A stretch of 64,000 bases of DNA from Malacoraja senta (taxonomy: Eukaryota): positions 90,148,001-90,212,000 of the forward strand of contig CM075977.1 of the NCBI GenBank assembly GCA_038087875.1, in the 5' to 3' direction. Below the pieces are notes generated by a model. That model made no database searches and had not been told where the DNA came from. It saw only the letters and a list, made by a program, of their open reading frames with translations. Positions within the stretch are counted from its first letter, which is position 1. Each line of letters opens with the position of its first letter. This document shows positions 5,367 through 60,700 of the stretch, in pieces. The translations under genes and the position numbers were made by a program.

Positions 5367-5665
5367 GGGCGGCATGGTGGCGCAGCGGTAGAGTTGCTGC
5401 CTTACAATGCCAGAGACCCGGGTTCGATCCTGACTGTACGGAGTTTGTACGTTCTCCCCGTGACCGCGTGGGTTTTCTCCGAGATCTTCGGTTTCCTCCC
5501 ACGCTCCAAAGAAGTAAAGGTTTGTAGGTTTATTGGCTTGGTATAACTGTACATTGTCCCTGGTGTGTGTAGGGTAGTGTTAATGTGCCTGGATTGCTGG
5601 CCAGTGCAGAATCGGTGGGCCGATGGGCCTGTTTCCACGCTGTATCTCTAAACTAAACTAAAACT
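5367..5665 (+). mobile_element. HE1/V-SINE-like element
   Basis: A box ggtggcgcagcggtagag, B box gggttcgatcc, V-domain, (ctaaa)n tail. Confidence 0.9.
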
Positions 5666-6192
5666 GAAGATAGACACCAAAGATAGACACAAAAAGCTGG
5701 AGTAACTCAGCGGGACAATAGACAATGGGTGCTGGAGTAGGCCATTCGGCCCTTCGAGCCAGCACCGCCATTCAATGTGATCATGGCTGATCATCCCCAA
5801 TCAGTACCGCGTTCCTGCCGTCTCCCCTGACTCCGCTATTTTTAAGAGCCCTATCTAGCTCTCTCTTGGAAAGCATCCAGAGAACCTGTGGCAGAGAATT
5901 CCACAGACTCACAACTCTCTGTGATCAAAAGTGTTTCCTCGTCTCCGTTCTAAATGGCTTACTCCTTATTCTTAAACTGTGGCCCCTGGTTCTGGACTCC
6001 CCCAACATCGGCAAACATGTTTCCTGCCTCTAGCGTGTCCAAACCTTTAACAATCTTATATGTTTCTTGGACCCTTGGGTCTCGCCCCGAAACGTCACCT
6101 TCTCTCCAGAGATGCTGCCTGTCCCGCTGAGCTACTCCAGCTTTTTGTGTCTATCTTCGGTTTAAACCAGCATCTGCAGTTCCTTCTTACAT
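5666..6192. mobile_element. Palindromic Penelope-terminus element inserted in the SINE tail
   Basis: Arms gatagacacaaaaagctggagtaactcagcggg / cccgctgagctactccagctttttgtgtctatc; (aaact)n SINE tail on both sides. Confidence 0.75.
5717..6068 (-). mobile_element. CR1 3' fragment nested in the Penelope palindrome
   Basis: ggagtaggccattcggcccttcgagcc 3'UTR and reverse-strand ORF2 C-terminus similar to 20410-20780. Confidence 0.9.
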
Positions 6193-19477: not shown

Positions 19478-20394
19478 GATCATAGAGGCACGGAACTATA
19501 CAGCACAGAAACGGCCCTCGCCCATGCCGACCCAAGAGCCTTCCTGAGCCAGGCCTATTTAGGGTGGCGCAGCGGTAGAGTTGCTGCCTTACAGCGCTTG
19601 CAGCGCCGGAGACCCGGGTTCCATCCCGACTACGGGTGCTGTCTGTACGGAGTTTGTACGTTCTCCCCGTGGCCGCGTGGGTTTTCTCCAAGATCTTCGG
19701 TTTCCTCCCACACTCTAAAGACATACAGGTTTGTAGGTTAATTGGCTTCGTATAAGTATAAATTGTCCCTAGTGTGTGTAGGATAGTGTTAATGTGCGGG
19801 ATCGCTGATCAGTGCTGAGTCGGTGGGCCGAAGGGCCTGGTTCCGCGCTGTATCTCTAAACTAAACTAAACTGAACTAAGCCTGGCCTGGGCCCATATAA
19901 TTCTAAACCTTTCTTATCCATGAACCTGTCCAAATGTTTTTTAAACATTGTAATTGTACCCGCTAGAACCATTTTCTCTGGCAGCTCATTCCATATACCC
20001 AGTGTCCTCTGTCCCTCAGATCCTGCTTAAAACTTTCCACTTTATCCTTAAAGCTAGCACCTTGTCCTGTGTCCATTTACTTTATCTGTGCCCGTCAATA
20101 TTTTATAAACCTTTATAAGGTCACCACTCGGCCTCCTTTGCTCCAGGGAAAACAGTCCCTGACTATCCAGTCTCTTCCTATAACTCAAGTCCTCCAGTCT
20201 CAGCACCATCCTTGTGATTTTTTTTTCTGCATCTCTTAAATGCCATAATCATATCTGCCTCCACCACCACCCACGGCAGTGTCTTCCATGCACTCACTAC
20301 TCCCTGTTTCAAAAAACCTGCCCTGCACATCTCCTTTAAACTATGCCTCTCTCACCTTAAAACTATGCCCTCTAGTATTTAATATTTCCATCCT
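19478..20394 (-). mobile_element. Older CR1 3' fragments; host of the full-length CR1, resuming at about 24766-24860
   Basis: CR1 3'-like sequence ending atatttccatcct; continues tcctggga...ccagagaagacaatccgagtctgtccaacc after the young element. Confidence 0.7.
19562..19879 (+). mobile_element. Young HE1/V-SINE-like element
   Basis: Complete head, V-domain and (ctaaa)n tail. Confidence 0.9.
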
Positions 20395-20494
20395 ACATAG
20401 ATACATAGATACATAGAAAATAGGTGCAGGAGTAGGCCATTCGGCCCTTCGAGCCTGCACCGCCATTCAATACGATCATGGCTGATCATCCAAC

Positions 20495-23431
20495 TCAGTA
20501 TCCCGTACCTGCCTTCTCTCCATACCCCCTGATCCCTTTAGCCACAAGGGCCACATCTAATTCCCTCTTAAATATAGCCAATGAACTGGCCTCAACTACC
20601 CTCTGTGGCAGAGAGTTCCAGAGATTCACCACTCTCTGTGTGAAAAAGTTTTTCCTCATCTCGGTCTTAAAGGATTTCCCCCTTATCCTTAAGCTGTGAC
20701 CCCTTGTCCTGGACTTCCCCAACATCGGGAACAACCTTCCTGCATCTAGCCTGTCCAACCCCATAAGAATTTTGTACGTTTCTATAAGATCCCCTCTCAA
20801 TCTCCTAAATTCTAGCGAGTATAAGCCAAGTCTATCCAGTCTTTCTTCATATGAAAGTCCTGACATCCCAGGAATCAGTCTGGTGAACCTTCTCTGCACT
20901 CCCTCTATGGCTATAATGTCCTTCCTCAGATTTGGAGACCAAAACTGTACGCAATACTCCAGGTGTGGTCTCACCAAGACCCTGTACAACTGCAGTAGAA
21001 CCTCCCTGCTCCTATACTCAAATCCTCTTGCTATGAAGGCCAACATACCATTCGCTTTCTTCACTGCCTGCTGCACCTGCATGCCTACTTTCAATGACTG
21101 GTGTACCATGACACCCAGGTCTCGCTGCATCTCCCCATTTCCTAATCGGCCACCATTTAGATAATAGTCTGCCTTCCCGTTTTTGCTACCAAAGTGGATA
21201 ACCTCACATTTATCCACATTATACTGCATCTGCCAAACATTTGCCCACTCACCCAGCCTATCCAAGTCACCTTGCAGTCTCCTAGCATCCTCCTCACAGC
21301 TAACACTGCCCCCCAGCTTAGTGTCATCCGCAAACTTGGAGATGTTGCTTTCAATTCCCTCGTCCAGATCATTAATATAAATTGTAAATAGCTGGGGTCC
21401 CAGCACTGAGCCTTGCGGTACCCCACTACTCACTGCCTGCCATTGTGAAAAGGACCCGTTTACTCCTACTCTTTGCTTCCTGTTTGCTAGCCAGTTCTCT
21501 ATCCACATCAATACTGAACCCCCAATACCGTGTGATTTAAGTTTGTATCCTAATCTCTTATGTGGTACCTTGTCGAAAGCCTTCTGAAAGTCCAGATACA
21601 ACACATCCACTGGTTCTCCCCTATCCACTCTACTAGTTACATCCTCGAAAAATTCTATAAGATTCGTCAGACACGATTTACCTTTCGTAAATCCATGCTG
21701 ACTTTGTCCAATGATTTCACCACTTTCCAAATGTGCTGCTATCCCATCTTTAATAACTGACTCTAGCAGTTTCCCCACTACCGATGTTAGACTAACTGGT
21801 CTGTAATTCCCCGTTTTCTGTCTCCCTCCCTTCTTAAAAAGTGGGGTTACGTTTGCTACCCTCCAATCCTCAGGAACTACTCCAGAATCTAAAGAGTTTT
21901 GAAAAATTATCACTAATGCATCCACTATTTCTGGAGCTACTTCCTTAAGTACTCTGGGATGCAGCCTATCTGGCCCTGGTGATTTATCGGCCTTTAACCC
22001 ATTCAATTTACCCAACACCACTTCCCGACTAACCTGGATTTCACTCAGTTCCTCCATCTCCTTTGACCCGCGGCCCCCTGCTATTTCCGGCAAATTATTT
22101 ATGTCTTCCTTAGTGAAGACGGAACCAAAGTAGTTATTCAATTGGTCTGCCATATCCTTGTTCCCCATGATCAATTCACCTGTTTCTGACTGCAAGGGAC
22201 CTACATTTGATTTAACTAATCTCTTTCTCTTCACATATCTATAAAAACTTTTGCAGTCAGTTTTTATGTTCCCTGCCAGTTTCCTTTCATAATCTATTTT
22301 CCCTTTCCTAATTAAGCCCTTTGTCCTCCTCTGCTGGTCTCTGAATTTCTCCCAGTCCTCTGGTATGCTGCTTTTTCTGGCTAATTTGTACGCATCATCT
22401 TTTGCTTTGATACTATCCCTGATTTCCCTTGTTATCCACGGATGCACTACCTTCCTTGATTTATTCTTTTGCCAAACTGGGATGAACAATTTTTGTAGTT
22501 CATCCATGCAGTCTTTAAATGCCTTCCATTGCATATCCACCGTCAACCCTTTTAGAACTAATTGCCAGTCAATCTTGGCCAATTCACGTCTCATACCCTC
22601 AAAGTTACCTTTCTTTAAGTTCAGAACCGTTGTTTCTGAATTAACAATGTCACTCTCCATCCTAATGAAGAACTCAACCATATTATGATCACTCTTGCCC
22701 AAGGGGGCACGTACAACAAGTCTGCTAACTAACCCTTCCTCATTACTCAATACCCAGTCTAGAATAGCCTGCTCTCTCGTTGGTTCCTCTACATGTTGGT
22801 TTAGATAACTATCCCTCATACATTCCAAGAAATCCTCTTCCTCAGCACCCCTGCCAATTTGATTCACCCAATCTATATGTAGATTGAAGTCACCCATTAT
22901 AACTGTTTTGCCTTTGTTGCACGCATTTCTAATTTCCTGTTTGATGCCATCCCCAACTTCACTACTACTGCTAGGTGGCCTGTACACAACACCCACCAGC
23001 GTTTTCTGCCCCTTAGTGTTTCGCAGCTCTACCCATACCGATTCCACATCCTCCAAGCTAATGTCCTTCCTTTCCACTGCGTTAATCTCCTCTCTAACCA
23101 GCAACGCTACCCCACCTCCTTTTCCTTTCTCTCTATCCCTCCTGAATATTGAATATCCCTGGATGTTCAGCTCCCAGCCTTGGTCACCTTGGAGCCATGT
23201 CTCCGTGATCCCAACTATATCATAATCATTAATTGCTATCTGCACGTTCAACTCATCCACCTTATTACGAATGCTCCTTGCATTGAGACACAAAGCCTTC
23301 AGGCTTGTTTTTACAACGCTCTTACCCCTTATACAATTATGTTGAAAAGTGGCTCTTTTTGATTTTTGCCCTGGATTTGTCTGCCTGCCACTTTTACCTT
23401 TCACCTTGCTACCTATTGCTTCCGCCCGCAT
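20495..23431 (-). CDS. CR1 ORF2: APE endonuclease plus reverse transcriptase. First ATG at 23431; frame open upstream to about 23794
   Basis: APE motifs LNARS, GITETWL, IMGDFN, SDH; RT motifs YLDFQKAFDKV, GVPQGSVLGP, FADD; uninterrupted. Confidence 0.97.
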   Translation of the reverse strand: MRAEAIGSKVKGKSGRQTNPGQKSKRATFQHNCIRGKSVVKTSLKALCLNARSIRNKVDELNVQIAINDYDIVGITETWLQGDQGWELNIQGYSIFRRDREKGKGGGVALLVREEINAVERKDISLEDVESVWVELRNTKGQKTLVGVVYRPPSSSSEVGDGIKQEIRNACNKGKTVIMGDFNLHIDWVNQIGRGAEEEDFLECMRDSYLNQHVEEPTREQAILDWVLSNEEGLVSRLVVRAPLGKSDHNMVEFFIRMESDIVNSETTVLNLKKGNFEGMRRELAKIDWQLVLKGLTVDMQWKAFKDCMDELQKLFIPVWQKNKSRKVVHPWITREIRDSIKAKDDAYKLARKSSIPEDWEKFRDQQRRTKGLIRKGKIDYERKLAGNIKTDCKSFYRYVKRKRLVKSNVGPLQSETGELIMGNKDMADQLNNYFGSVFTKEDINNLPEIAGGRGSKEMEELSEIQVSREVVLGKLNGLKADKSPGPDRLHPRVLKEVAPEIVDALVIIFQNSLDSGVVPEDWRVANVTPLFKKGGRQKTGNYRPVSLTSVVGKLLESVIKDGIAAHLESGEIIGQSQHGFTKGKSCLTNLIEFFEDVTSRVDRGEPVDVLYLDFQKAFDKVPHKRLGYKLKSHGIGGSVLMWIENWLANRKQRVGVNGSFSQWQAVSSGVPQGSVLGPQLFTIYINDLDEGIESNISKFADDTKLGGSVSCEEDARRLQGDLDRLGEWANVWQMQYNVDKCEVIHFGSKNGKADYYLNGGRLGNGEMQRDLGVMVHQSLKVGMQVQQAVKKANGMLAFIARGFEYRSREVLLQLYRVLVRPHLEYCVQFWSPNLRKDIIAIEGVQRRFTRLIPGMSGLSYEERLDRLGLYSLEFRRLRGDLIETYKILMGLDRLDAGRLFPMLGKSRTRGHSLRIRGKSFKTEMRKNFFTQRVVNLWNSLPQRVVEASSLAIFKRELDVALVAKGIRGYGEKAGTGY

Positions 23432-23610
23432 TTTACACCCCTCTGTTTCTCTGCTCACCCATTTAAGAACCCCACCACCTCTTATTCTCTGTTTATTATT
23501 GTTTTCTTCTTTCCCCCCTACATGTTGGGTCTGAGTGCTTTCCTTCTCTGCCTCCTGCCTCACACACTGTCTAATAGCATTCTCTATTTGAGTCCCTCCC
23601 CCCAACCATT

Positions 23611-23620
23611 CTAGTTTAAA
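23611..23620 (-). promoter_or_regulatory. Candidate -1 programmed ribosomal frameshift site (U UUA AAC followed by UAG)
   Basis: Minus strand reads ACT TTA AAC TAG in the ORF1 frame; the -1 frame is the open ORF2 frame. Confidence 0.65.
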
Positions 23621-24546
23621 GTCTCCCCAGTAGCCTTTGCAGATCTCCCCGCCAGGATATCGGTCCCCCTCAGGTTCAAGTGCAACCCATCCTTTTTGTA
23701 CAGGTCGAACCTTCCACAAAAGAGGTCCCAATGATCCAGAAATTTGAATCCCTGCCTTCTGCACCAGTCCTTCAGCCACGCATTTATCCTCCACCTCGCT
23801 CCATTCCTACTCTCACTGTCGCGTGGTACAGGCAGTAATCCCGAGATTGTTACCTTTGCTGTCCTTCTCTTTAACTCCCCTCCTAACTCCCTAAATTCTC
23901 CTTTCAGGACCTCTTCTCTTTTTTTACCTATGTCATTGGTACCTATATGTATCACGACCTCGGGCTCCTCTCCCTGCCCTTTCAGGATGTCTTGGACACG
24001 TTGAGACACATCACAGACCCTGGCACCAGGGAGGCAAACTACCATCCGGGTCTCCCGACTGCGTCCACAGAATCGCCTGTCTGACCCCCTAACTATAGAG
24101 TCCCCTATTAATATTGCCCTCCTCTTCTTTTCCTTACCCTTCTGAGCAACAGGACCGGTCTCTATACCGGAGGCCCGGCCGCTGTCGCTACCCCCAGGTA
24201 GGCTGTCCACCCCAACAGTGCTCAAACAGGAGTACTTATTGTCAAGGTGTACAGCCACCGGGGTACTCTCTAGTCCCTGCCTGTGCCCCTTGCCTCTCCC
24301 AACCGTGATCCACTTGCCTGCCTCCTGTGGTGTTGGAGTGACCATATCCCTGTAACTCCTCACAATGACTTCCTCGCTCTCCCTGACCAGACGGAGGTCA
24401 TCGAGCTGCTGCTCCAGGTTCCTAATACGGTCCATTAGGAGCCCCATCTCGATACACCTGACGCAGATGTGGACGTCTGGAGGGCTATCAGACTCCATGA
24501 CTTCCCACATCTGACATCCAGAACAGTAAACTGCCCTGGCCCTCAT
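23611..24546 (-). CDS. CR1 ORF1: Cys zinc-finger, coiled coil, SGNH/GDSL esterase-like domain
   Basis: CSGC...CVRC, LLMDRIRNLEQQLDDLRL heptads, IGDS, HIGTND, DGLHLN; first ATG at 24546. Confidence 0.93.
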   Translation of the reverse strand: MRARAVYCSGCQMWEVMESDSPPDVHICVRCIEMGLLMDRIRNLEQQLDDLRLVRESEEVIVRSYRDMVTPTPQEAGKWITVGRGKGHRQGLESTPVAVHLDNKYSCLSTVGVDSLPGGSDSGRASGIETGPVAQKGKEKKRRAILIGDSIVRGSDRRFCGRSRETRMVVCLPGARVCDVSQRVQDILKGQGEEPEVVIHIGTNDIGKKREEVLKGEFRELGGELKRRTAKVTISGLLPVPRDSESRNGARWRINAWLKDWCRRQGFKFLDHWDLFCGRFDLYKKDGLHLNLRGTDILAGRSAKATGETLN

Positions 24547-24570
24547 ACTCCCCTTACCCTGGATATAATA

Positions 24571-24672
24571 CAAAACAACCTGCTACAATACAAAACAACC
24601 TGCTACAATACAAAACAAACTGCTACAATACAAAACAAACTGCTACAATACAAAACAAACTGCTACAATACA
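24571..24672. repeat. 20-bp tandem repeat (tgctacaatacaaaacaaac) in the CR1 5'UTR
   Basis: About 5 near-identical units visible. Confidence 0.95.
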
Positions 24673-24674
24673 GT

Positions 24675-24736
24675 ACAATCAGCAGGGATCTGACTCCCAA
24701 TCAGCTGCTCCCTCTTGTCTGCGTCCACCAATCAGC
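24675..24736. promoter_or_regulatory. CCAAT/NF-Y-type boxes in the CR1 5' end (candidate internal promoter)
   Basis: ccaatcagc at 24697-24705 and 24728-24736 (31 bp apart); acaatcagc at 24675-24683. Confidence 0.5.
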
Positions 24737-27700
24737 GGCTTCCTCAAACCCACTTGTTTTTGAAGTCCTGGGAATACTTTTTAAAATCTACATCTATCAG
24801 GCCTCCCCACAATCTCCGGCATTCCAGAGAAGACAATCCGAGTCTGTCCAACCTCTTCTTATATTTTTGAGTCCAGGCCTGGAGGAATATCTGGTTATAA
24901 CCAGCACAGGTTGGGAAAAGATCGCCTGATTGGGGTGCCATGTGGAGTCGTAGATGAGGGATTTGGACGAGGAAGTTAGCTGATGTGGGATAGGAAATGG
25001 GAACAGATCTGCAAGTATAGAACCATTCAAGCAAAGACTAACAATGTGAACGCTTGTGCTTGGACTCTTGGTAAATTGCATCTTCAATTGCAAAAGAGGA
25101 TTTGTGTGGAATAAGAATAGCTGCACCCTGTCAATGTGTATTAATTGGAGCTTGCTGTTTTCTTGGACCAATCATCTTAATTAATCATCTTATATTCATT
25201 TATAGATTTTGTTTTTGTTTCCATGTCTATGTGTATCCATGTTGATGCCATTAACTTCACAGATCACAAGAATGGTATGAAGCTGTTACTTTCCGCTTTA
25301 TCTGGCATTTCCGCCTTAACCAAGAAGAATTCAACAGGCATACACTTCAGTATATGAAGTGTTTTGATTGGTATTCTTAGTTGGTTGATGAGAGGTCCAG
25401 GCTCAATATTAATGTTCTGTGATGTATCAAAATCCCATGTGATGGTTATTGGTGCTATGGTTTGGAGAAATGAAAGAAGGGATATTTCTGCAATTTCAGG
25501 ACATGGAATGATAAGGATGGAATCCAATCATGGCGGTGACAGCAAGAGTTCAAGCAAAACTTGAGCTAACATTTCAGAAATTCTGGATAAAATAGAGATT
25601 AAATGGTATATTTTCTCATTAATAGCTCACCATTAAACTAGGATGATACATTAATTCGCATATCACTGTACCTTAATTGGTACATGTGACAATAAAAGAC
25701 CTTTGAAACCATTTGAAACCTTTGAAGTGCCAGCCTAAGTTTCAGAAATTGCAGTTAGAGACTGACTAATTTAATTCAGGTATCTAATAACTTCCAAACG
25801 TTAATATGAGGAAAATTTTAAAAGTGCACCCTCATTTTTTGTGGTAACAAAGCTCGTGAATGGAATAAGAAGAGTGATTTAAGCCTTTAGAAATGTCGAA
25901 ATGCATCAATTGGAAAACATGAACATTTAGTTGTAAGATACTTGATGTTTTTATTTTGATATATGGTTTTCACAGCAAAGGTTCTTCACACATTCCGACA
26001 GGGGTGTTTCCTGTCAATACCTGGAAATGGATTATCTGTATTCAATATTTTGCTCCATTGGGTTCAGTAGATATCTGGGTTAAATTCTTAGCTTTGTATT
26101 GAATACTATCCCAAGAGATTTATCACATACTCAAAGAGAACTAAGTAGTCATGGGATTAAAAAACAACAACGTTATTTTAAGTAAAATCATTGTCCAAAT
26201 GGAACACAAAAATACCTCAGAAGGGGTGCATGAAATTATTATTTTTTCCACTAGAATAGAAATTCATATTACATTCGACTGTCTGGTCACATGCCGAGTA
26301 TCTTGTAAAGATTATCACATGCCAGTCACACTAAGCCTCAGTAGTGCCGCTCGGTATCATTAGTCTCAGCATCAATTAATATTCTCCTGACCTCATCTTA
26401 TGTAGAGAATTATCAGTGCATATTTGTTTCAGAGCTGGGGAGAAAACATTATGCCAGGGTATGATTTAAAAATTGTAGACAAAACAACAGATTTTCTCAT
26501 CTGCAGCATCGAATGCATTTCATTAAGCTTTGAGGACAAGTAACAAGGAAGACTGAATAGCCCAGGTGGTAAAGAAAGACTTAGAGGTATAATGGAAGGT
26601 TAACATTCCAGATGGGATATGGAAGATCAACAGCAGCTGAAAATGTTGATCCCACTCTGTGTGTAAACTGAAGAAAAATGTCCAAACTGTCATGATCTAC
26701 TGATTAAAGGATCTGCTGTGTACACTGGTCAACCTTTATCCTGAACCCTGATTAGACTTCATTTTTTTCACCCCACACTGCATTAACATCATTGAAAGGG
26801 TTTGACATTTGCAGTTAACTCCTTCCTCACCGCTGGGACTGTATAATTTTTCAAGTACTATTATATTTTCTTTCACGCATTAGCTGAGATACTTTTCAGT
26901 TAATTCTTCCCTCGTGGAAAATATGCAGTTGTCCAGAACATTGTGTAATTCATACTTTCTGGGTTAAGTAAAAATACTGTAGTTGTGATTTTCACGTAGT
27001 ACATTAAATAATAGTCTATGCTCTGAGGCATAATTTTCTTAGATTCTTGAATTGTCTCTTCTATGCTTTGTTAAACTTGTTCAAAAATATATTTAGAGAT
27101 ATCTCTGCACAAATATAAGACTAAAATGTATTTATTTAATCTATTTTAATTCCTCAGTTCTATTTCCCCGCTTTAGTTTAGTTTAAAGATACAGCATGGA
27201 AACAGAATGAATACAGCATGAATACAGCTGTACATCCTATATTCAGGATGAATACATATGAATACAGCATGGTGGCCTTTCACCATGTCAACGTCAATCA
27301 CTGATGGCCTATTCACACTAGTTCTACGTTATCCCACTTTCTCATCTACACACTAGGGGCAATCCAAAGAGGTCTTGATTGATTGCTATTAATTCAGTGC
27401 TTAAATAAGAATGAACCATTTCTGACTATAACATTTCTTCTGGTAAGCTGATGCCCAGTCAAGCATGAACCGTGAGGGAATGTGTGGTGTGACATGAGGT
27501 CTTGCAAGAGGTGTCACCACCAAGTTTGGAGCTGCAGTTCAACACTTCAGCACTGGTTGAGGCAGAGTTATCAAACAATACTATTTTTTGTAGAACGCAA
27601 TTCTTATTGGTGCAATAATCTACGCTGCCAATAACCAGTGCTCATATTTTGTTACTACCTTTCTAAATCTCCTTTGACTGGATCCAACAATCTTTCCCTG

Positions 27701-36864: not shown

Positions 36865-37390
36865 AAGGTAATGAGTGATAGGAGCAGAATTAGGCCATTC
36901 GGCCCTTCGTCTACTCTGCCATTCAATCATGGCTGATCTATCTCTTCCTCCTCACCCCATTCTCCTGCCTTCTCCCCATAACCCCTGCCACCTGTACTAA
37001 TCAAGAATCTATCAATATCTGCCTTAAATATATTCATTGACAGCCTCCACAGCCATCTGTGGCAAAGAATACCACAGATTCACCACCCTCTGACTGAATA
37101 AATTCCTCCTCATCTCCTTCCTAAAGGAACGCCTTTCAATTCTGAGGTTATGACCTTTAGTCCTCGACTCTCCCACTCGAGGAAACATCCTCTCCACATC
37201 CACTCTATCCAAGCCTTTCCCTGTTCTGTACGTTTCAATGCGGTCCCCCTCATTCTTCTAAACTCCAGCAAGTATAGGCCCAGTGCCGTCAAACGCTCAT
37301 CGCATGTTAATCCACTCATTCCTGGGATTATTCTTGTAAACCTCCTCTGGGCCCTCTCCAGAGCCAGCACATCCCTCCTCAGATAGCACA
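36865..37390 (-). mobile_element. CR1 3' fragment
   Basis: LERAQRRFTRIIPGMSGL...; GESRTKGHNLRI...FSQRVVNLWYSLP. Confidence 0.92.
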
Positions 37391-46349: not shown

Positions 46350-46620
46350 AGGGCAGCAAAGTGACGCAGCTGGTAGAGCTGGTGTCCCACAGCGCCAGAG
46401 ACCATCCTGACTTCAGGTGCAGTCTGTGTGGAGTTTGCATGTTCTCCCTGTATCCGCATGGATTTCCTCCAAGTGCTCTGGTTTCCTCTCACATCCCAAA
46501 GACATGCTGGTAATTGCCACTGTGGATTGCCCCTAGTGTGTAGGGAGTGGATAAGAAAGTGGGATAACATAGAACTAGTGGAATGGGCAATTGATGGTCG
46601 GTGTGGACTTGGTGGGCCAT
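46350..46620 (+). mobile_element. V-SINE-like element
   Basis: Head and V-domain motifs; truncated by CR1. Confidence 0.8.
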
Positions 46621-47068
46621 AGACAAAGGGTGCAGGAGTAGGCCATTCGGCCCTTCGAGCCAGCACCGCCATTCACTGTGATCATGGCTGATCATCCACA
46701 ATCAGTACCACGTTCCTGCCTTCTCCTCATATCCCTTTACTCCGCTATCTTTAAGAGCTCTGTCTAACTCTCTTGAAAGCATCCAGAGAATCGGCCTCCA
46801 CTGCCTTCTGAGGCAGAGAATTCCACAGATTCACAACTCTCTGGGTGAAAAGGTTTTTCATCGTTCTAAATGGCCTACCCCTTATTCTTAAACTGTGGCC
46901 CCTGGTTCTACACTCTTCAAACATTGGGAACATGTTTCCTGCCTCTAGTTTGTCCAATCCCTTATAATCTTATGTCTCAATAAAATCCCCTCTCATCCTT
47001 CTAAATTCCAGTGTATACAAGTCCAGTCGTTCCATTCTTTCAACATATGACAGTCCAGCCATTCCGGG

Positions 47069-47576
47069 TATAATGGCAGTCTTTACGATGTTCTCAAAGT
47101 CCAACTTGGATAGCCATTATTTCTCGGATGATGGTGAGGAGGTATAATTTACTCACACGACACACTTAAGATAGAAAAACGAATCTTCCAAACGTTGTTT
47201 CTTGATTAATTGGTCTTTTATTGAAGTAGTACATACCAAATAAATAATCCGTCACTTTCTGTTCTTAATCGCTGTTCCATTCATGTCATAAATCATATGA
47301 AAGTTTCTTCTTATAAAAGTATGTTGTCTCATTAACGTGTGTGCATCGTGGTCATGTCGTGTGTGTGAATGGATATAAAACTGTATTCTCACCATCCTTC
47401 CGAGACCCAACTGACTCCAAATCTATGAGTCTGCACTAGCCTCCTCTAGAAATAGACACACCCCTTCTACATATCAAATCCCACCTACAAAAATGCAGAC
47501 AAATAAAAACTAAAATATCAAAAATGTTAGACATGGCTCTAATATATATTGACTTAAGCTTAATGGCTCCTACACT
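47069..47576. other. Unclassified 508-bp insertion inside CR1
   Basis: CR1 sequence cc(c)gggaattaacc is split, with ggg on both sides; no tail or TIR. Confidence 0.65.
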
Positions 47577-51366: not shown

Positions 51367-51826
51367 GACAATAGACAATAGGTGCAGGAGTAGGCCATTC
51401 GGCCTTTCGAGCCAGCACCGCCATTCAATGTGATCATGGCTGATCATCCCCAATCAGTACCTCGTTCCTGCCTTCTCCCGATATCCCCTGACTCCGCTAT
51501 TTTTAAGAGCCCTATCTAGCTCTCTCTTGAAAGCATCCAGAGAACCTGAGGCAGAGAATTCCACACTCAGAACTCTCTGTGAGAAAAAGTGTTTCCTCGT
51601 CTCTGTTCTAAATGGCTTACTCCTTATTCTTAAACTGTGGCCCCTGGTTCTGGACTCCCCCAACATCGGGAACATGTTTCCCGCCTCTAGCGTGTCCAAG
51701 CCCTTAACAATCTAATATGTTTCAATGAGATACCCTCTCATCCTTCTAAACTCCAGAGTGTACAAGCCCAGCTGCTCCATTCTCTCAGCATATGACAGTC
51801 CCGCCATCTCGGGAATTAACCTTGTA
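51367..51826 (-). mobile_element. CR1 3' fragment
   Basis: MFPMLGESRTRGHSLRI...KAGTRY; 3'UTR and (gacaata)n tail. Confidence 0.92.
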
Positions 51827-57616: not shown

Positions 57617-57795
57617 AGATGTGATGTATTCAAGAGAGAGTTAGATATATCTCTTAGGGCTAACGGAATCAAGGGATATGGGCAGAAGGCTGGAACGGGG
57701 TACTGATTGTGGATGATCAGCCATGATCATATTGAATGGCGGTGCTGGCTCGAAGGGCCGAATGGCCTACTCCTGCACCTATTTTCTATGTTTCA
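57617..57795 (+). mobile_element. CR1 3' end
   Basis: ttcaagagagagttagat...aatggcctactcctgcacctattttctatg. Confidence 0.9.
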
Positions 57796-60700
57796 AGGTT
57801 TCAAACATGAAACTGGCTGATGTGACTTGGTTGGATATGGCACTGCTCTACACCCATTGACAATACAGGGGGTAGAGGTCGAGCAGAACAAGGATCAGGA
57901 AAGAACAAACATAACTCTTCACTCCAAAACACCTTTACAACTTCCAGTGAAGTAACTCATCCATTATTGTGCTGCATTTCTTCAGGTGTAAAGCTCAACA
58001 GAATGTCAACAAGCCTGACTTGGGTATAAGAAAATCTCTTCATTTTGGAAACTTGCTTCTACAAATGACAGTAAATCACGGGGAAAAATGTGAAGTATAG
58101 CTTTGTTATTCCAGCAAAGAAAACATATCTTTAAAATTAAAATATACTCGGTTAAATATTCTAAAAATGACAAAAGTTTGCGCTAATTTATCAATCAACA
58201 TGGATGATATATAAGCAGTTTCAAAGCATAGAATAATAAACAACCTGGATTTTCTGAAATATGAAACGGGCTTATAATTCTTTAATAGCTTCAACAAAAA
58301 GAAATACAATAGATTTTTTGAGTAAAGTGTAAATCTGTGGTGTGACAATATTTGCACCTCTCCAACTTCCATAGCACTATTGTCACTTTTGATGCTGCAT
58401 GGCCAAGTTCATTTTGTTTAGCATCCCCTTTCCTTAAAAAAATCCCAACTAAAATAAAATTAAAATACAACTGTAGTACCTATGCTTTCTGATGCATATG
58501 GGTTTTGCATATGAAGATGATGTTACAGAGGAAGGGCTTGGGGTTTGGCTGATGGATTTTATTTGTCTGATAGAGTTGACCAGGGAAATAGAGCTGCAGC
58601 TGGTTACTTCATTAGGTTATCTCATTGATTGAACTGTGCTGAAGTGGTGCAGCAGGCTCCACGATAACTGCTGGTAATAGAACAAAATGAATTCTTATCA
58701 CAGAGATTGGAAAGGCCATTAACCTCGGCTTCCAGTGCTTTCAGAAGTTAAAGACAGGAAACTGCATGATGACCGGCAAAACTGCTTTCTGTCTAACCAC
58801 AGGTCACGTTGGAGGGCACGTGGGAATTTTTACCCTTCGGCTTCTGCATAGATGAAACAATTAAAAGACAGATGTTTAAAATCATTCTGTAATTTAAAAA
58901 AAGAGAAGGAAGAAAATATCAAAATAGAAAGGATTTTATCTTGATTATTTTGAATGCGGCAATAATTGTTTGCATCAGGGCACTTGCTCTATTACAAGGA
59001 CAATGATATCAGAAATATTTACCAATAGGTGTAGTTTTTGGATCATTTGTTCTTCCTTTGCTGCTTGAGTGGTGAAAATAATTTAATCCATTCATAAATA
59101 CATCTCCTGTTTCCATGACATTGGCGGAGGGGCATCTTGCAATTCTTCAAACGATCTGGCCCATAAATGCAGTGCATGGCAAATGAATATTTGCTATTTC
59201 TTGCCACAAATAGTGGATTAACTGGTTAATTAATCATAATTAGCCTTTTTGAGCCAAGCATTAGCTCAGTGAAAAATTCTAAGGGAAAATAATCTGCAAT
59301 CATTCAAATTAGACACCTGTGAGGCTGTTTAAAATGCATTTATATAATTCAATTGGAACACGATATGTTAGGCTAGTTTCTCTGAGGTACACATAAAAAA
59401 ATGGCTGATTAGTGATTGCTGCCTTAATGTTGTGACCTTAAATGAAATTGAAGCACTTAGTGATGGATGTGGTCACTTGTTGTGGCTGGGATAATCGGTT
59501 GCTGTACTGTGCAGTGAAGAAAGCATACAGTACAGATGTAGATGTGGACTATATAATATAGTTATATGAAATTCAGTTCACCCACTGACAGATCGCAGAT
59601 CAGATCAGTTGTATGCTTTTCTGTCTATCAATATTACGGCTCCTCCCCATAGATCTAGTCGCTCACTCCTGAAAGATATTTAGACTAAATACTGTATGCG
59701 TGCATGAGGTATTCCCAATCCTGTAGATCCTTACTGCATTATTTACGTGTGGGTTTTCATTTCATCTCTTTGTAGCATTTTTTTTTTTAATGGAGAAAAG
59801 CACTCACATCTGTCTTCTCAATTACCATCACAGTAATTATTATGTAAAAACTTTGTGGAATATATGAATCAATATGAAATATAACTGAAAAACAGCAACA
59901 CAAATGAAGTCTTAAAACTGTAGATACACAACCAAATATCACATGATCTATGCATTATACCTTTTTATTAAAGGGCAGAATATGAAGCCAAACTGATCTA
60001 ACGGATAAGCACATGCAGTATATATTTAAAAAAAATACACTTCTTTGTTTATATCAAGTAACAAACGAAATAATTAGTTCCTAATGCTTAATATAATATT
60101 TATGCTTAATATTTATTGAGTGTATTCACTCTGGACCAGTGTCAAATGTTGTTTGATAAAATTCCTGTGAGGTGCATTGGGGCCTTCTTAATTTGTTAAC
60201 AGTGCTACATGAATGCAAATTGCTGTCATTGTTAATAACTATGAATTAGCATGATGGTATATTAAATAATATTAAGGATCATAGAGGATTCATAATAACT
60301 ATCGGCATTGGCTTGAGAAGGCAAAACCAACAGCAGAAGCAATAACCAAAACCAGAATGAAACCCCCACAAAATTGAAATGATACACTTACAAATAATGG
60401 AAAATACAGAGGAGGGATTTCAGGGTTGCAATTTAATTGAGTAGTTTAAATTATTGTTATAAACTGCTTGAATTCATTCTCATAGTTGATGGCATTGTCT
60501 GAAGCAAAAATGAGATCTCGGCCTTGTAATAATTCCCAGCTATCCTCCCTGTCCCGTTAAAAAGACCTGAAGTGAACACATTTGGTTCAGGGAGGGTTTT
60601 CAGTCTTTCAGTCTGATGTATAACGCACATTATTAGTATATCTGTAGAAATTCTCAGCAAAATCAATATGAGAGAAGGAATCGACATTGAAGGAATGTGT

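Follow-up and report, generated by a model that had tools for sequence, protein, structure and literature searches.

How LINEs translate ORF2 from a bicistronic RNA has been an open question for a long time and has been worked out only partly, for human L1 and for SART1. In L1, ORF2 is translated without an AUG by unconventional reinitiation (PMC5009743), and in SART1 a UAAUG stop-start overlap couples termination to reinitiation (PMC5009743, PMC3708506). In both elements ORF2 is not reached by ordinary scanning and its expression is kept low, there is no slippery heptamer, and the L1 spacer carries stops and ORF2p is a separate protein. In contrast, retroviruses and LTR retrotransposons express reverse transcriptase by -1 frameshifting as a Gag-Pol fusion made in small amounts (PMC5009743), and in Rous sarcoma virus the A_AAU_UUA site appears to be followed directly by UAG. 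Coronaviruses use the heptamer U_UUA_AAC with an H-type pseudoknot 5-7 nt downstream and no adjacent stop. In arteriviruses (nsp1beta/PCBP on a C-rich motif) and cardioviruses (2A), frameshifting is instead stimulated by proteins acting with linear or distant 3' elements. CR1 is the main retrotransposon of birds, crocodilians, turtles, snakes and many fishes, yet its ORF2 expression strategy is not described in the literature that we searched.

Here we examined a CR1 element in a 64,000-nucleotide stretch of Malacoraja senta DNA (GCA_038087875.1, contig CM075977.1, positions 90,148,001 to 90,212,000), referred to below as the window. An earlier note, made from the sequence alone, had proposed that a T_TTA_AAC slippery site joins ORF1 to ORF2 of this element by a predicted -1 frameshift. 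The sequence observation was confirmed, and comparison with other junctions supports the interpretation, although frameshifting itself remains an inference in the absence of protein or ribosome data. We found no paper linking CR1 to a slippery site or to ribosomal frameshifting, although the older literature, including Kapitonov & Jurka 2003 (PMC7528939), was not fully covered and prior mention in the 1997 chicken and turtle CR1 papers cannot be excluded.

Anatomy of the element and its ORF1/ORF2 junction

The window contains an intact, young, full-length CR1-type LINE on the minus strand at 20394-24740, where the 5' end is approximate and the 3' end is the end of an octamer tail. Analysis with Tandem Repeats Finder identified a 20-nt unit repeated 5.3 times in the 5' UTR (24567-24672). 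The 3' end is formed by an octamer microsatellite, (TCTATGTA)x3, at 20394-20417, rather than poly(A), and is of the CR1 type, for which the consensus is probably ATTCTRTG. Other 3' fragments of the family in the window end at 20400-20413, and an older CR1 3' fragment lies directly upstream of the element at 24744-25034.

The ORF1 frame is open at 23611-24573, and its first ATG, at 24546, gives a protein of 311 amino acids (23611-24546), like the homologues. This protein has an N-terminal CxxC...CxxC pair (about 24454-24525), a coiled-coil-like stretch and a GDSL/SGNH esterase (about 23662-24108; PF13472, E = 3e-14), and it ends in GETLN. The esterase matched that of the zebrafish L2 element ZfL2-1 (PDB 4c1b) at E = 1.6e-27. 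However, L2-type ORF1 proteins end in LSDNISRTLRTI rather than in LN, and they lack the junction signal described below. The ORF2 frame is open from 23794 to 20495, with its first ATG at 23429-23431. ORF2 (20495-23431) is intact, carries the FADD motif and contains an APE endonuclease at about 22685-23269 and a reverse transcriptase at about 21182-21826 (PF03372, PF14529 and PF00078). All vertebrate canonical CR1s have been reported to encode, or to cluster with elements that encode, an esterase ORF1 (PMC13343379). The ORF2 of two bird CR1 loci (L003 and L005) aligned at 32-46% identity, and the L003 protein was 84% identical to crane CR1 proteins. A separate protein search assigned L003 only to Chordata.

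On the minus strand, ORF1 ends ACT TTA AAC TAG. The heptamer T_TTA_AAC (23620-23614) is in the X_XXY_YYZ register of ORF1, the TAG stop codon (23613-23611) directly abuts it, and a G-rich tract, GGTTGGGGGGAGGG, lies at 23607-23594, beginning 6 nt after the heptamer. ORF2 lies in the -1 frame, which is open from the heptamer. The linker between the slip site and the first ATG (23613-23432) is G/A-rich and comprises about 61 codons without a stop, and composition-matched shuffles put the chance of this at 0.013, compared with the roughly 5% estimated in the earlier note. The predicted fusion is 311 + 1039 = 1350 amino acids, in agreement with the note. Across about 14,800 contigs of the likely source organism, no variant reaching 5% and no indel fell in the heptamer, the stop or the G-run. 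Similarly, in three other species no variant reaching 10% fell in the heptamer or stop. Some of the sequencing runs in the latter comparison are only guessed to be RNA, and we therefore make no claim that the element is expressed.

Conservation of the junction among diverged CR1 elements

The earlier note named two sequence-level outcomes that would count against frameshifting, namely, loss of the heptamer at synonymous positions and stops or non-triplet indels in the linkers of other copies. In order to test these, we retrieved 12 further ORF1/ORF2 junctions (loci L033 to L039, L001, L003, L005, L007 and L019), and the hypothesis passed both tests. The ORF1 tails of these loci are 25-79% identical to each other; one group is bird CR1, and one matches a Xenopus-named ORF1. 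All carry TTTAAAC (TTTAAAG in L007), a directly adjacent TAG or TAA and a G-run about 10 nt further on, and in all 12 ORF2 lies in the -1 frame. The heptamer was invariant in a 12-junction alignment. In most lineages the -1 frame is closed 4-7 codons upstream of the heptamer, so entry into that frame must occur at or after it.

As a codon-level control, we examined the invariant DGLHL motif, at which the Asp, Gly and Leu codons vary freely. In contrast, the terminal Leu is TTA in 13 of 13 loci, including the window, although TTA accounts for only 8.5% of Leu codons nearby. Asn is AAC in 12 of 13 loci (background, 40%), and the base before TTA is T in 13 of 13, spread over 7 different codons (background, 23%). 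At the protein level, 47 of 84 esterase ORF1 proteins end in LN, and 46 of those 47 are preceded by a residue that can be encoded by NNT. A search for contigs encoding proteins from large NCBI assemblies returned no DNA, and as a result the coelacanth, Callorhinchus and named ray or shark junctions are supported only by their protein C termini.

Upstream of the first in-frame ATG, the linkers hold 0 stops in 416 codons in the ORF2 frame, against 35 and 33 in the other two frames (shuffle product, P = 2e-10), and their lengths differ only by whole codons. The linker of the window is 129 nt (43 codons) longer than that of L033. The linker shows no purifying selection on its amino acids; subfamily variants fall 5/5/5 over the codon positions and only 2 of 15 are synonymous. 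It contains TNPGQ, which is not the D(V/I)ExNPGP motif of a 2A-like peptide (PMC3708506). The ATG at 23431, down to which the earlier note had followed the open frame, is not a conserved landmark: the same codon is ACG in L033, whose ORF2 is 94% identical. The first ATG lies at +2 to +491 nt, and in L038 (ORF2 open to the contig end, 894 codons), L001, L005 and L037 it falls inside the APE domain.

The earlier note had also placed the G-rich tract at the usual spacer distance for a stimulatory structure. We folded 114 nt of the window (z = -1.47) and 60 and 100 nt of 12 junctions (z-scores from -1.1 to +1.0). No stable or conserved stem-loop and no shared helix followed the site, although pseudoknots were not searched for with a dedicated tool, and the long-range GGUUGGG/CCCAAC pairing seen in the window is not conserved. 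ViennaRNA with G-quadruplex support predicted a two-tier quadruplex in only 5 of 12 junctions (the window, L033, L035, L037 and L039), and we rejected it as the conserved feature. What is conserved is a plain G-run, unpaired in most minimum-energy folds, whose core lies 11-15 nt after the heptamer, somewhat beyond the classic spacer of 5-9 nt. In the window, this core is GGGGGG at 23598-23603 plus GGG at 23594-23596. The invariant alignment columns (G33, G35-37 and G40) span the third position of a variable codon, a GGG codon and the first position of the next variable codon, and we therefore rejected a Gly-x-Gly protein motif as the main constraint.

Models for expression of ORF2

These observations suggest that ORF2 of canonical CR1 is probably reached by programmed -1 ribosomal frameshifting at the last two codons of ORF1. 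In this model, with tRNA-Leu on UUA and tRNA-Asn on AAC, the ribosome slips back one base to UUU AAA, reads CUA instead of the stop UAG and runs through an unconserved, always-open linker into the endonuclease domain. The product would be a fusion of ORF1p and ORF2p of roughly 1350 amino acids (zinc knuckle, esterase, APE and reverse transcriptase), whereas most ribosomes would terminate and make ORF1p alone. This would set a low ORF2:ORF1 ratio and tie the enzyme to the ORF1p-coated RNA, as Gag-Pol does in retroviruses. The putative signal, comprising the heptamer, the adjacent UAG or UAA and the G-run, is shared by CR1 lineages of cartilaginous fishes, coelacanth (protein level only), frogs and birds. 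However, that slippage occurs, its efficiency and the contributions of the stop and the G-run are inferred; the usual strong stimulator is missing, so efficiency could be very low, and L007 carries UUUAAAG.

As in the retroviral systems, the heptamer lies at the very end of the upstream ORF and the reverse transcriptase is in the -1 frame, but the element is a non-LTR LINE with an esterase ORF1p rather than a Gag, it has no protease to process the fusion, and no downstream stem-loop or pseudoknot was found in the folds examined. The heptamer is identical to that of coronaviruses, but here there is an adjacent stop and an unpaired G-run. The position of a short linear motif about 10-15 nt after the shift site, a spacing of an order noted previously (PMC5009743), is reminiscent of the arterivirus and cardiovirus stimulators. 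This is an analogy only, as the motif in CR1 is G-rich and no binding factor is known.

If it operates, such a signal would predict a Gag-Pol-like fusion, changing how CR1 ribonucleoprotein assembly and cis-preference should be viewed, and would add a very large class of -1 frameshift sites to vertebrate genomes, where the known cases (PEG10, PNMA3/5 and ZCCHC5) all derive from LTR elements. It would also indicate to annotators where CR1 ORF2 really begins and explain why gene predictors emit odd esterase-APE chimeras. A broader possibility, which we regard as tentative, is that canonical CR1 LINEs of jawed vertebrates, including the bird and reptile CR1s that dominate those genomes, make their endonuclease and reverse transcriptase only as this fusion, with a signal kept since the lineages of cartilaginous fishes and birds separated. 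In that case the adjacent stop codon and the unpaired G-run would act as the stimulator without a classical RNA structure, perhaps through a trans-acting factor or a contact with rRNA, and CR1 would be the first frameshift-expressed LINE in vertebrates.

Alternatively, ribosomes may terminate at the ORF1 stop and a fraction may resume close by in the -1 frame without an AUG, making a separate ORF2p, with the UUUAAAC-UAR-G-run acting as a coupling signal, for example, a special termination context plus a G-rich tether to the 40S subunit like the calicivirus TURBS. The precedents of L1 and SART1 support this model, and the open linker upstream of the AUG fits it as well. In addition, L033 has a TAATG overlap of the SART1 type, more distant esterase-ORF1 LINEs (L010 and L013) have TGATG or TAATG overlaps, and several junctions contain UGGGA-like motifs in the G-run. 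Nevertheless, we consider reinitiation unlikely, as it does not explain why the base before UUA is always U or why Leu is always UUA and Asn AAC (12 of 13 loci), which are exactly the X_XXY_YYZ rule. Among the junctions only L033 has TAATG, the first ATG lying +59 to +491 nt away elsewhere, and no start or near-cognate codon is conserved after the stop. The known TURBS, moreover, seems to lie upstream of the stop-start site, not downstream.

It is improbable that the conserved junction is not a translational signal but an RNA element for packaging or ORF1p binding, or a preferred template-switch or recombination point, with ORF2 translated from whichever AUG or near-cognate codon lies in the linker. 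ORF1 and ORF2 are clearly reshuffled at this point, since, against the window, L033 is 50% identical in ORF1 but 94% in ORF2, while L034 is 76% identical in ORF1 but 52% in ORF2, and reticulate ORF1 evolution is documented (PMC4120745). However, this explanation does not predict the constant -1 frame, the triplet-only length changes or the absence of stops upstream of the first AUG, and it does not fit the loci with no AUG before the endonuclease motif (L038, L001, L005 and L037). Finally, TTTAAACTAR occurs once more in the window by chance, at 27178, where the second TTTAAACTAA is unrelated, but the possibility that the heptamer lies next to the ORF1 stop by chance in this one copy, with ORF2 starting at the ATG at 23431, is already refuted by the comparative data.

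Organization of the LINE and its ORF1/ORF2 junction

The window carries a full-length LINE on the minus strand at about 20394-24740. From 5' to 3', the element begins with a 5' UTR that holds a perfect-looking tandem array of a 20-nt unit (24567-24672, minus strand; 5.3 copies, 98% matches), ending just upstream of the ORF1 ATG; the 2026 survey of CR1-group elements describes 5' repeat arrays only in elements that lack ORF1. ORF1 (24546-23611) has an N-terminal CxxC...CxxC pair and a GDSL/SGNH esterase domain (Pfam PF13472, E = 3e-14), for which the closest solved structure is the ZfL2-1 ORF1 esterase, 4c1b. ORF2 contains an APE endonuclease and a reverse transcriptase (PF03372, PF14529, PF00078) and is followed by a 3' tail of (TCTATGTA)x3, which is the CR1 type of 3' end. 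A 22-nt unit repeated 1.9 times lies just 3' of this octamer tail, at 20333-20373. A 3' fragment of an older CR1 ORF2 (…KKRLDRLGLSSLECRRLWGGLIDV…) lies directly upstream of the full-length element, at 24744-25034 on the minus strand, so the young copy sits next to or inside an older one. Several 5'-truncated 3' ends of related CR1 elements, with 68-85% identity to 20400-20930, were also detected in the window (5376-6067, 36878-37384, 46618-47071, 51371-51816, and 57627-57802), but none reaches the ORF1/ORF2 junction.

Both ORFs of the element are intact. About 14,800 contigs of the best-matching sequencing run lie on a 701-nt stretch around the junction (23250-23950), and 41% of them are at least 99% identical; the family is therefore large and young. 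The best ORF1 protein hits are skate proteins (Leucoraja erinacea, 84%).

The earlier note had identified a slippery heptamer at the end of ORF1, with ORF2 open in the -1 frame, and this observation holds. ORF1 ends ...GAG ACT TTA AAC TAG, which places the heptamer T_TTA_AAC (23620-23614) in the X_XXY_YYZ register. The -1 frame (…TTT AAA CTA GAA TGG…) is the ORF2 frame, and it runs without a stop through 61 codons to the first ATG (23431) and on to 20495. The tract GGTTGGGGGGAGGG starts 6 nt after the heptamer. Composition-matched shuffles give a chance of 0.013 that the window's own linker is open.

Conservation of the junction across CR1 lineages

The decisive evidence is comparative. A search with ORF1 found 140 homologues. 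Those from skates, rays, sharks, coelacanth, and Xenopus, at 36-84% identity, end almost without exception in ...x-Leu-Asn-stop, whereas the 15 residues before that are highly variable. Of the 84 proteins that reach the C terminus, 47 end in LN, and in 46 of those 47 the preceding residue is one that can be encoded NNT (G, T, S, Y, D, C, A, I). The L2-type esterases of teleosts end quite differently. One homologue (P0062), from Protopolystoma xenopodis, a monogenean parasite of Xenopus, closely resembles the ORF1 protein named for Xenopus tropicalis (P0058) and ends ...EEILN, reflecting either host DNA in the parasite assembly or a transfer.

We obtained DNA for 12 other junctions, seven by searching for contigs that encode the ORF1 homologues (loci L033 to L039) and five from metagenome contigs (L001, L003, L005, L007, and L019). 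Their ORF1 tails are 25-79% identical to one another. The L003 group is bird CR1, 84% identical to crane proteins and 56-57% identical to turtle proteins, and L036 was fetched through a protein (P0059) whose close relative in the ORF1 hit list is P0058. L035 (GCA_019909505.1, contig JADHER010000072.1, 4159 bp) is filed under Pseudomonas aeruginosa, and its protein is named "SGNH/GDSL hydrolase family protein," but it is a complete CR1 ORF1 plus ORF2 most like the shark and ray ORF1s and is most likely contamination of a bacterial assembly.

Every one of the 12 junctions reads TTTAAAC in the same register, with L007 having TTTAAAG. Each is followed at once by TAG or TAA and then by a G-run whose invariant core lies 11-15 nt after the heptamer. 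In the 12-sequence alignment, in which mean column identity is 46%, these are the only invariant columns apart from one upstream G. A minority of contigs from two other species (X17 and X27, 1 contig each) carry a G-to-C change inside the G-run, at window position 23599 (C>G on the plus strand).

In order to establish whether the constraint acts on nucleotides, we used an internal control. At the invariant protein motif DGLHL, the Asp, Gly, and Leu codons vary freely among loci. In contrast, the terminal Leu is TTA in 13/13 loci, although TTA is only 8.5% of neighboring Leu codons, and Asn is AAC in 12/13 (background, 40%). The base before TTA is T in 13/13, spread over seven different codons (background, 23%). 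That last position is exactly what the tandem-slippage rule requires, and no protein-level constraint explains it. The control therefore shows that the constraint acts on nucleotides.

Entry into ORF2 and sequence features of the linker

In all 12 junctions ORF2 lies in the -1 frame, although the linker from heptamer to endonuclease motif ranges from 27 to 104 codons. Length differences are whole codons; for example, the window's linker is 129 nt longer than that of L033, whose ORF2 is 94% identical. Between the heptamer and the first in-frame ATG, or the endonuclease motif where there is no ATG, 416 codons contain 0 stops in the ORF2 frame, compared with 35 and 33 in the other two frames. The product of the per-locus shuffle probabilities is 2e-10, although this treats the loci as independent, which the three bird loci in the test are not fully. 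The first ATG lies anywhere from +2 to +491 nt after the stop, and in L038 (ORF2 open for 894 codons to the contig end), L001, L005, and L037 it lies inside the endonuclease domain, past the catalytic Asn of the NARS motif. The window's ATG at 23431 is ACG in L033. In most lineages the -1 frame is closed by a stop 4-7 codons upstream of the heptamer, so entry must occur at or just after it.

Some features of the junction do not fit the textbook arrangement. No stable or conserved hairpin follows the site, minimum-energy z-scores are about 0 in all junctions, and a two-tier G-quadruplex is predicted in only 5 of 12. The conserved element is a plain G-run, and its invariant bases span codon boundaries of otherwise variable codons, so it is an RNA-level feature rather than a Gly motif. 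Linear motifs 12-15 nt downstream that act through bound factors are known from other systems (PMC5009743). The stop codon is always adjacent and may help by leaving the A site slow to fill.

The amino acid sequence of the linker evolves as if neutral. Among subfamily variants in the source genome, 2 of 15 are synonymous and they fall 5/5/5 over codon positions, whereas in the adjacent ORF1 stretch 12 of 19 fall at third positions. The linker appears to be constrained only to stay open.

Possible mechanisms of ORF2 expression

These data suggest that the best-supported mechanism is programmed -1 frameshifting that produces an ORF1p-ORF2p fusion of about 1350 aa at low frequency, an inference that we hold with reasonable but not full confidence. 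Frameshifting may have been proposed for some insect LINE-like elements decades ago. The comprehensive frameshifting review (PMC5009743) discusses HeT-A, TART, and L1 but no CR1 or other LINE ORF1-ORF2 frameshift. The 2026 survey of CR1-group elements, the paper on Jockey-superfamily ORF1, and the esterase structure paper do not contain the word frameshift. No paper combining CR1, slippery, and frameshift was found in the literature searched, which did not extend to the older descriptions of CR1. What appears to be new is therefore the type of element, a CR1 LINE, rather than the kind of mechanism.

The main rival, which we consider unlikely, is AUG-independent reinitiation after termination, as in human L1, or coupling of the SART1 type. 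L033 even has a TAATG overlap, and more distant esterase-ORF1 LINEs (L010:1682 and L013:1708) lack the heptamer and instead have TGATG or TAATG stop-start overlaps, the arrangement known from SART1; the CR1 group seems to use at least two ways to reach ORF2. This model explains the open linker but not the exact X_XXY_YYZ conservation. A nontranslational role for the junction, for instance as a recombination point, is suggested by clear reshuffling of ORF1 and ORF2 between lineages (compare PMC4120745). Against the element in the window (20495-24573), L033 is 50% identical in ORF1 but 94% in ORF2, while L034 is 76% identical in ORF1 but 52% in ORF2. The switch lies at the conserved junction or linker, which suggests module exchange by template switching there. 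However, such a role does not explain the frame constancy, and we regard it as very unlikely. Chance is excluded.

Public gene models (P0033, Hypanus sabinus LOC132396611; P0125 and P0159, Limosa lapponica) read straight through the junction in the -1 frame (…REGFKLN…, …SFKLEVKGEGD…), giving annotated esterase-APE or linker-APE chimeras, although P0033 needs one extra base in the T-run relative to the usual junction.
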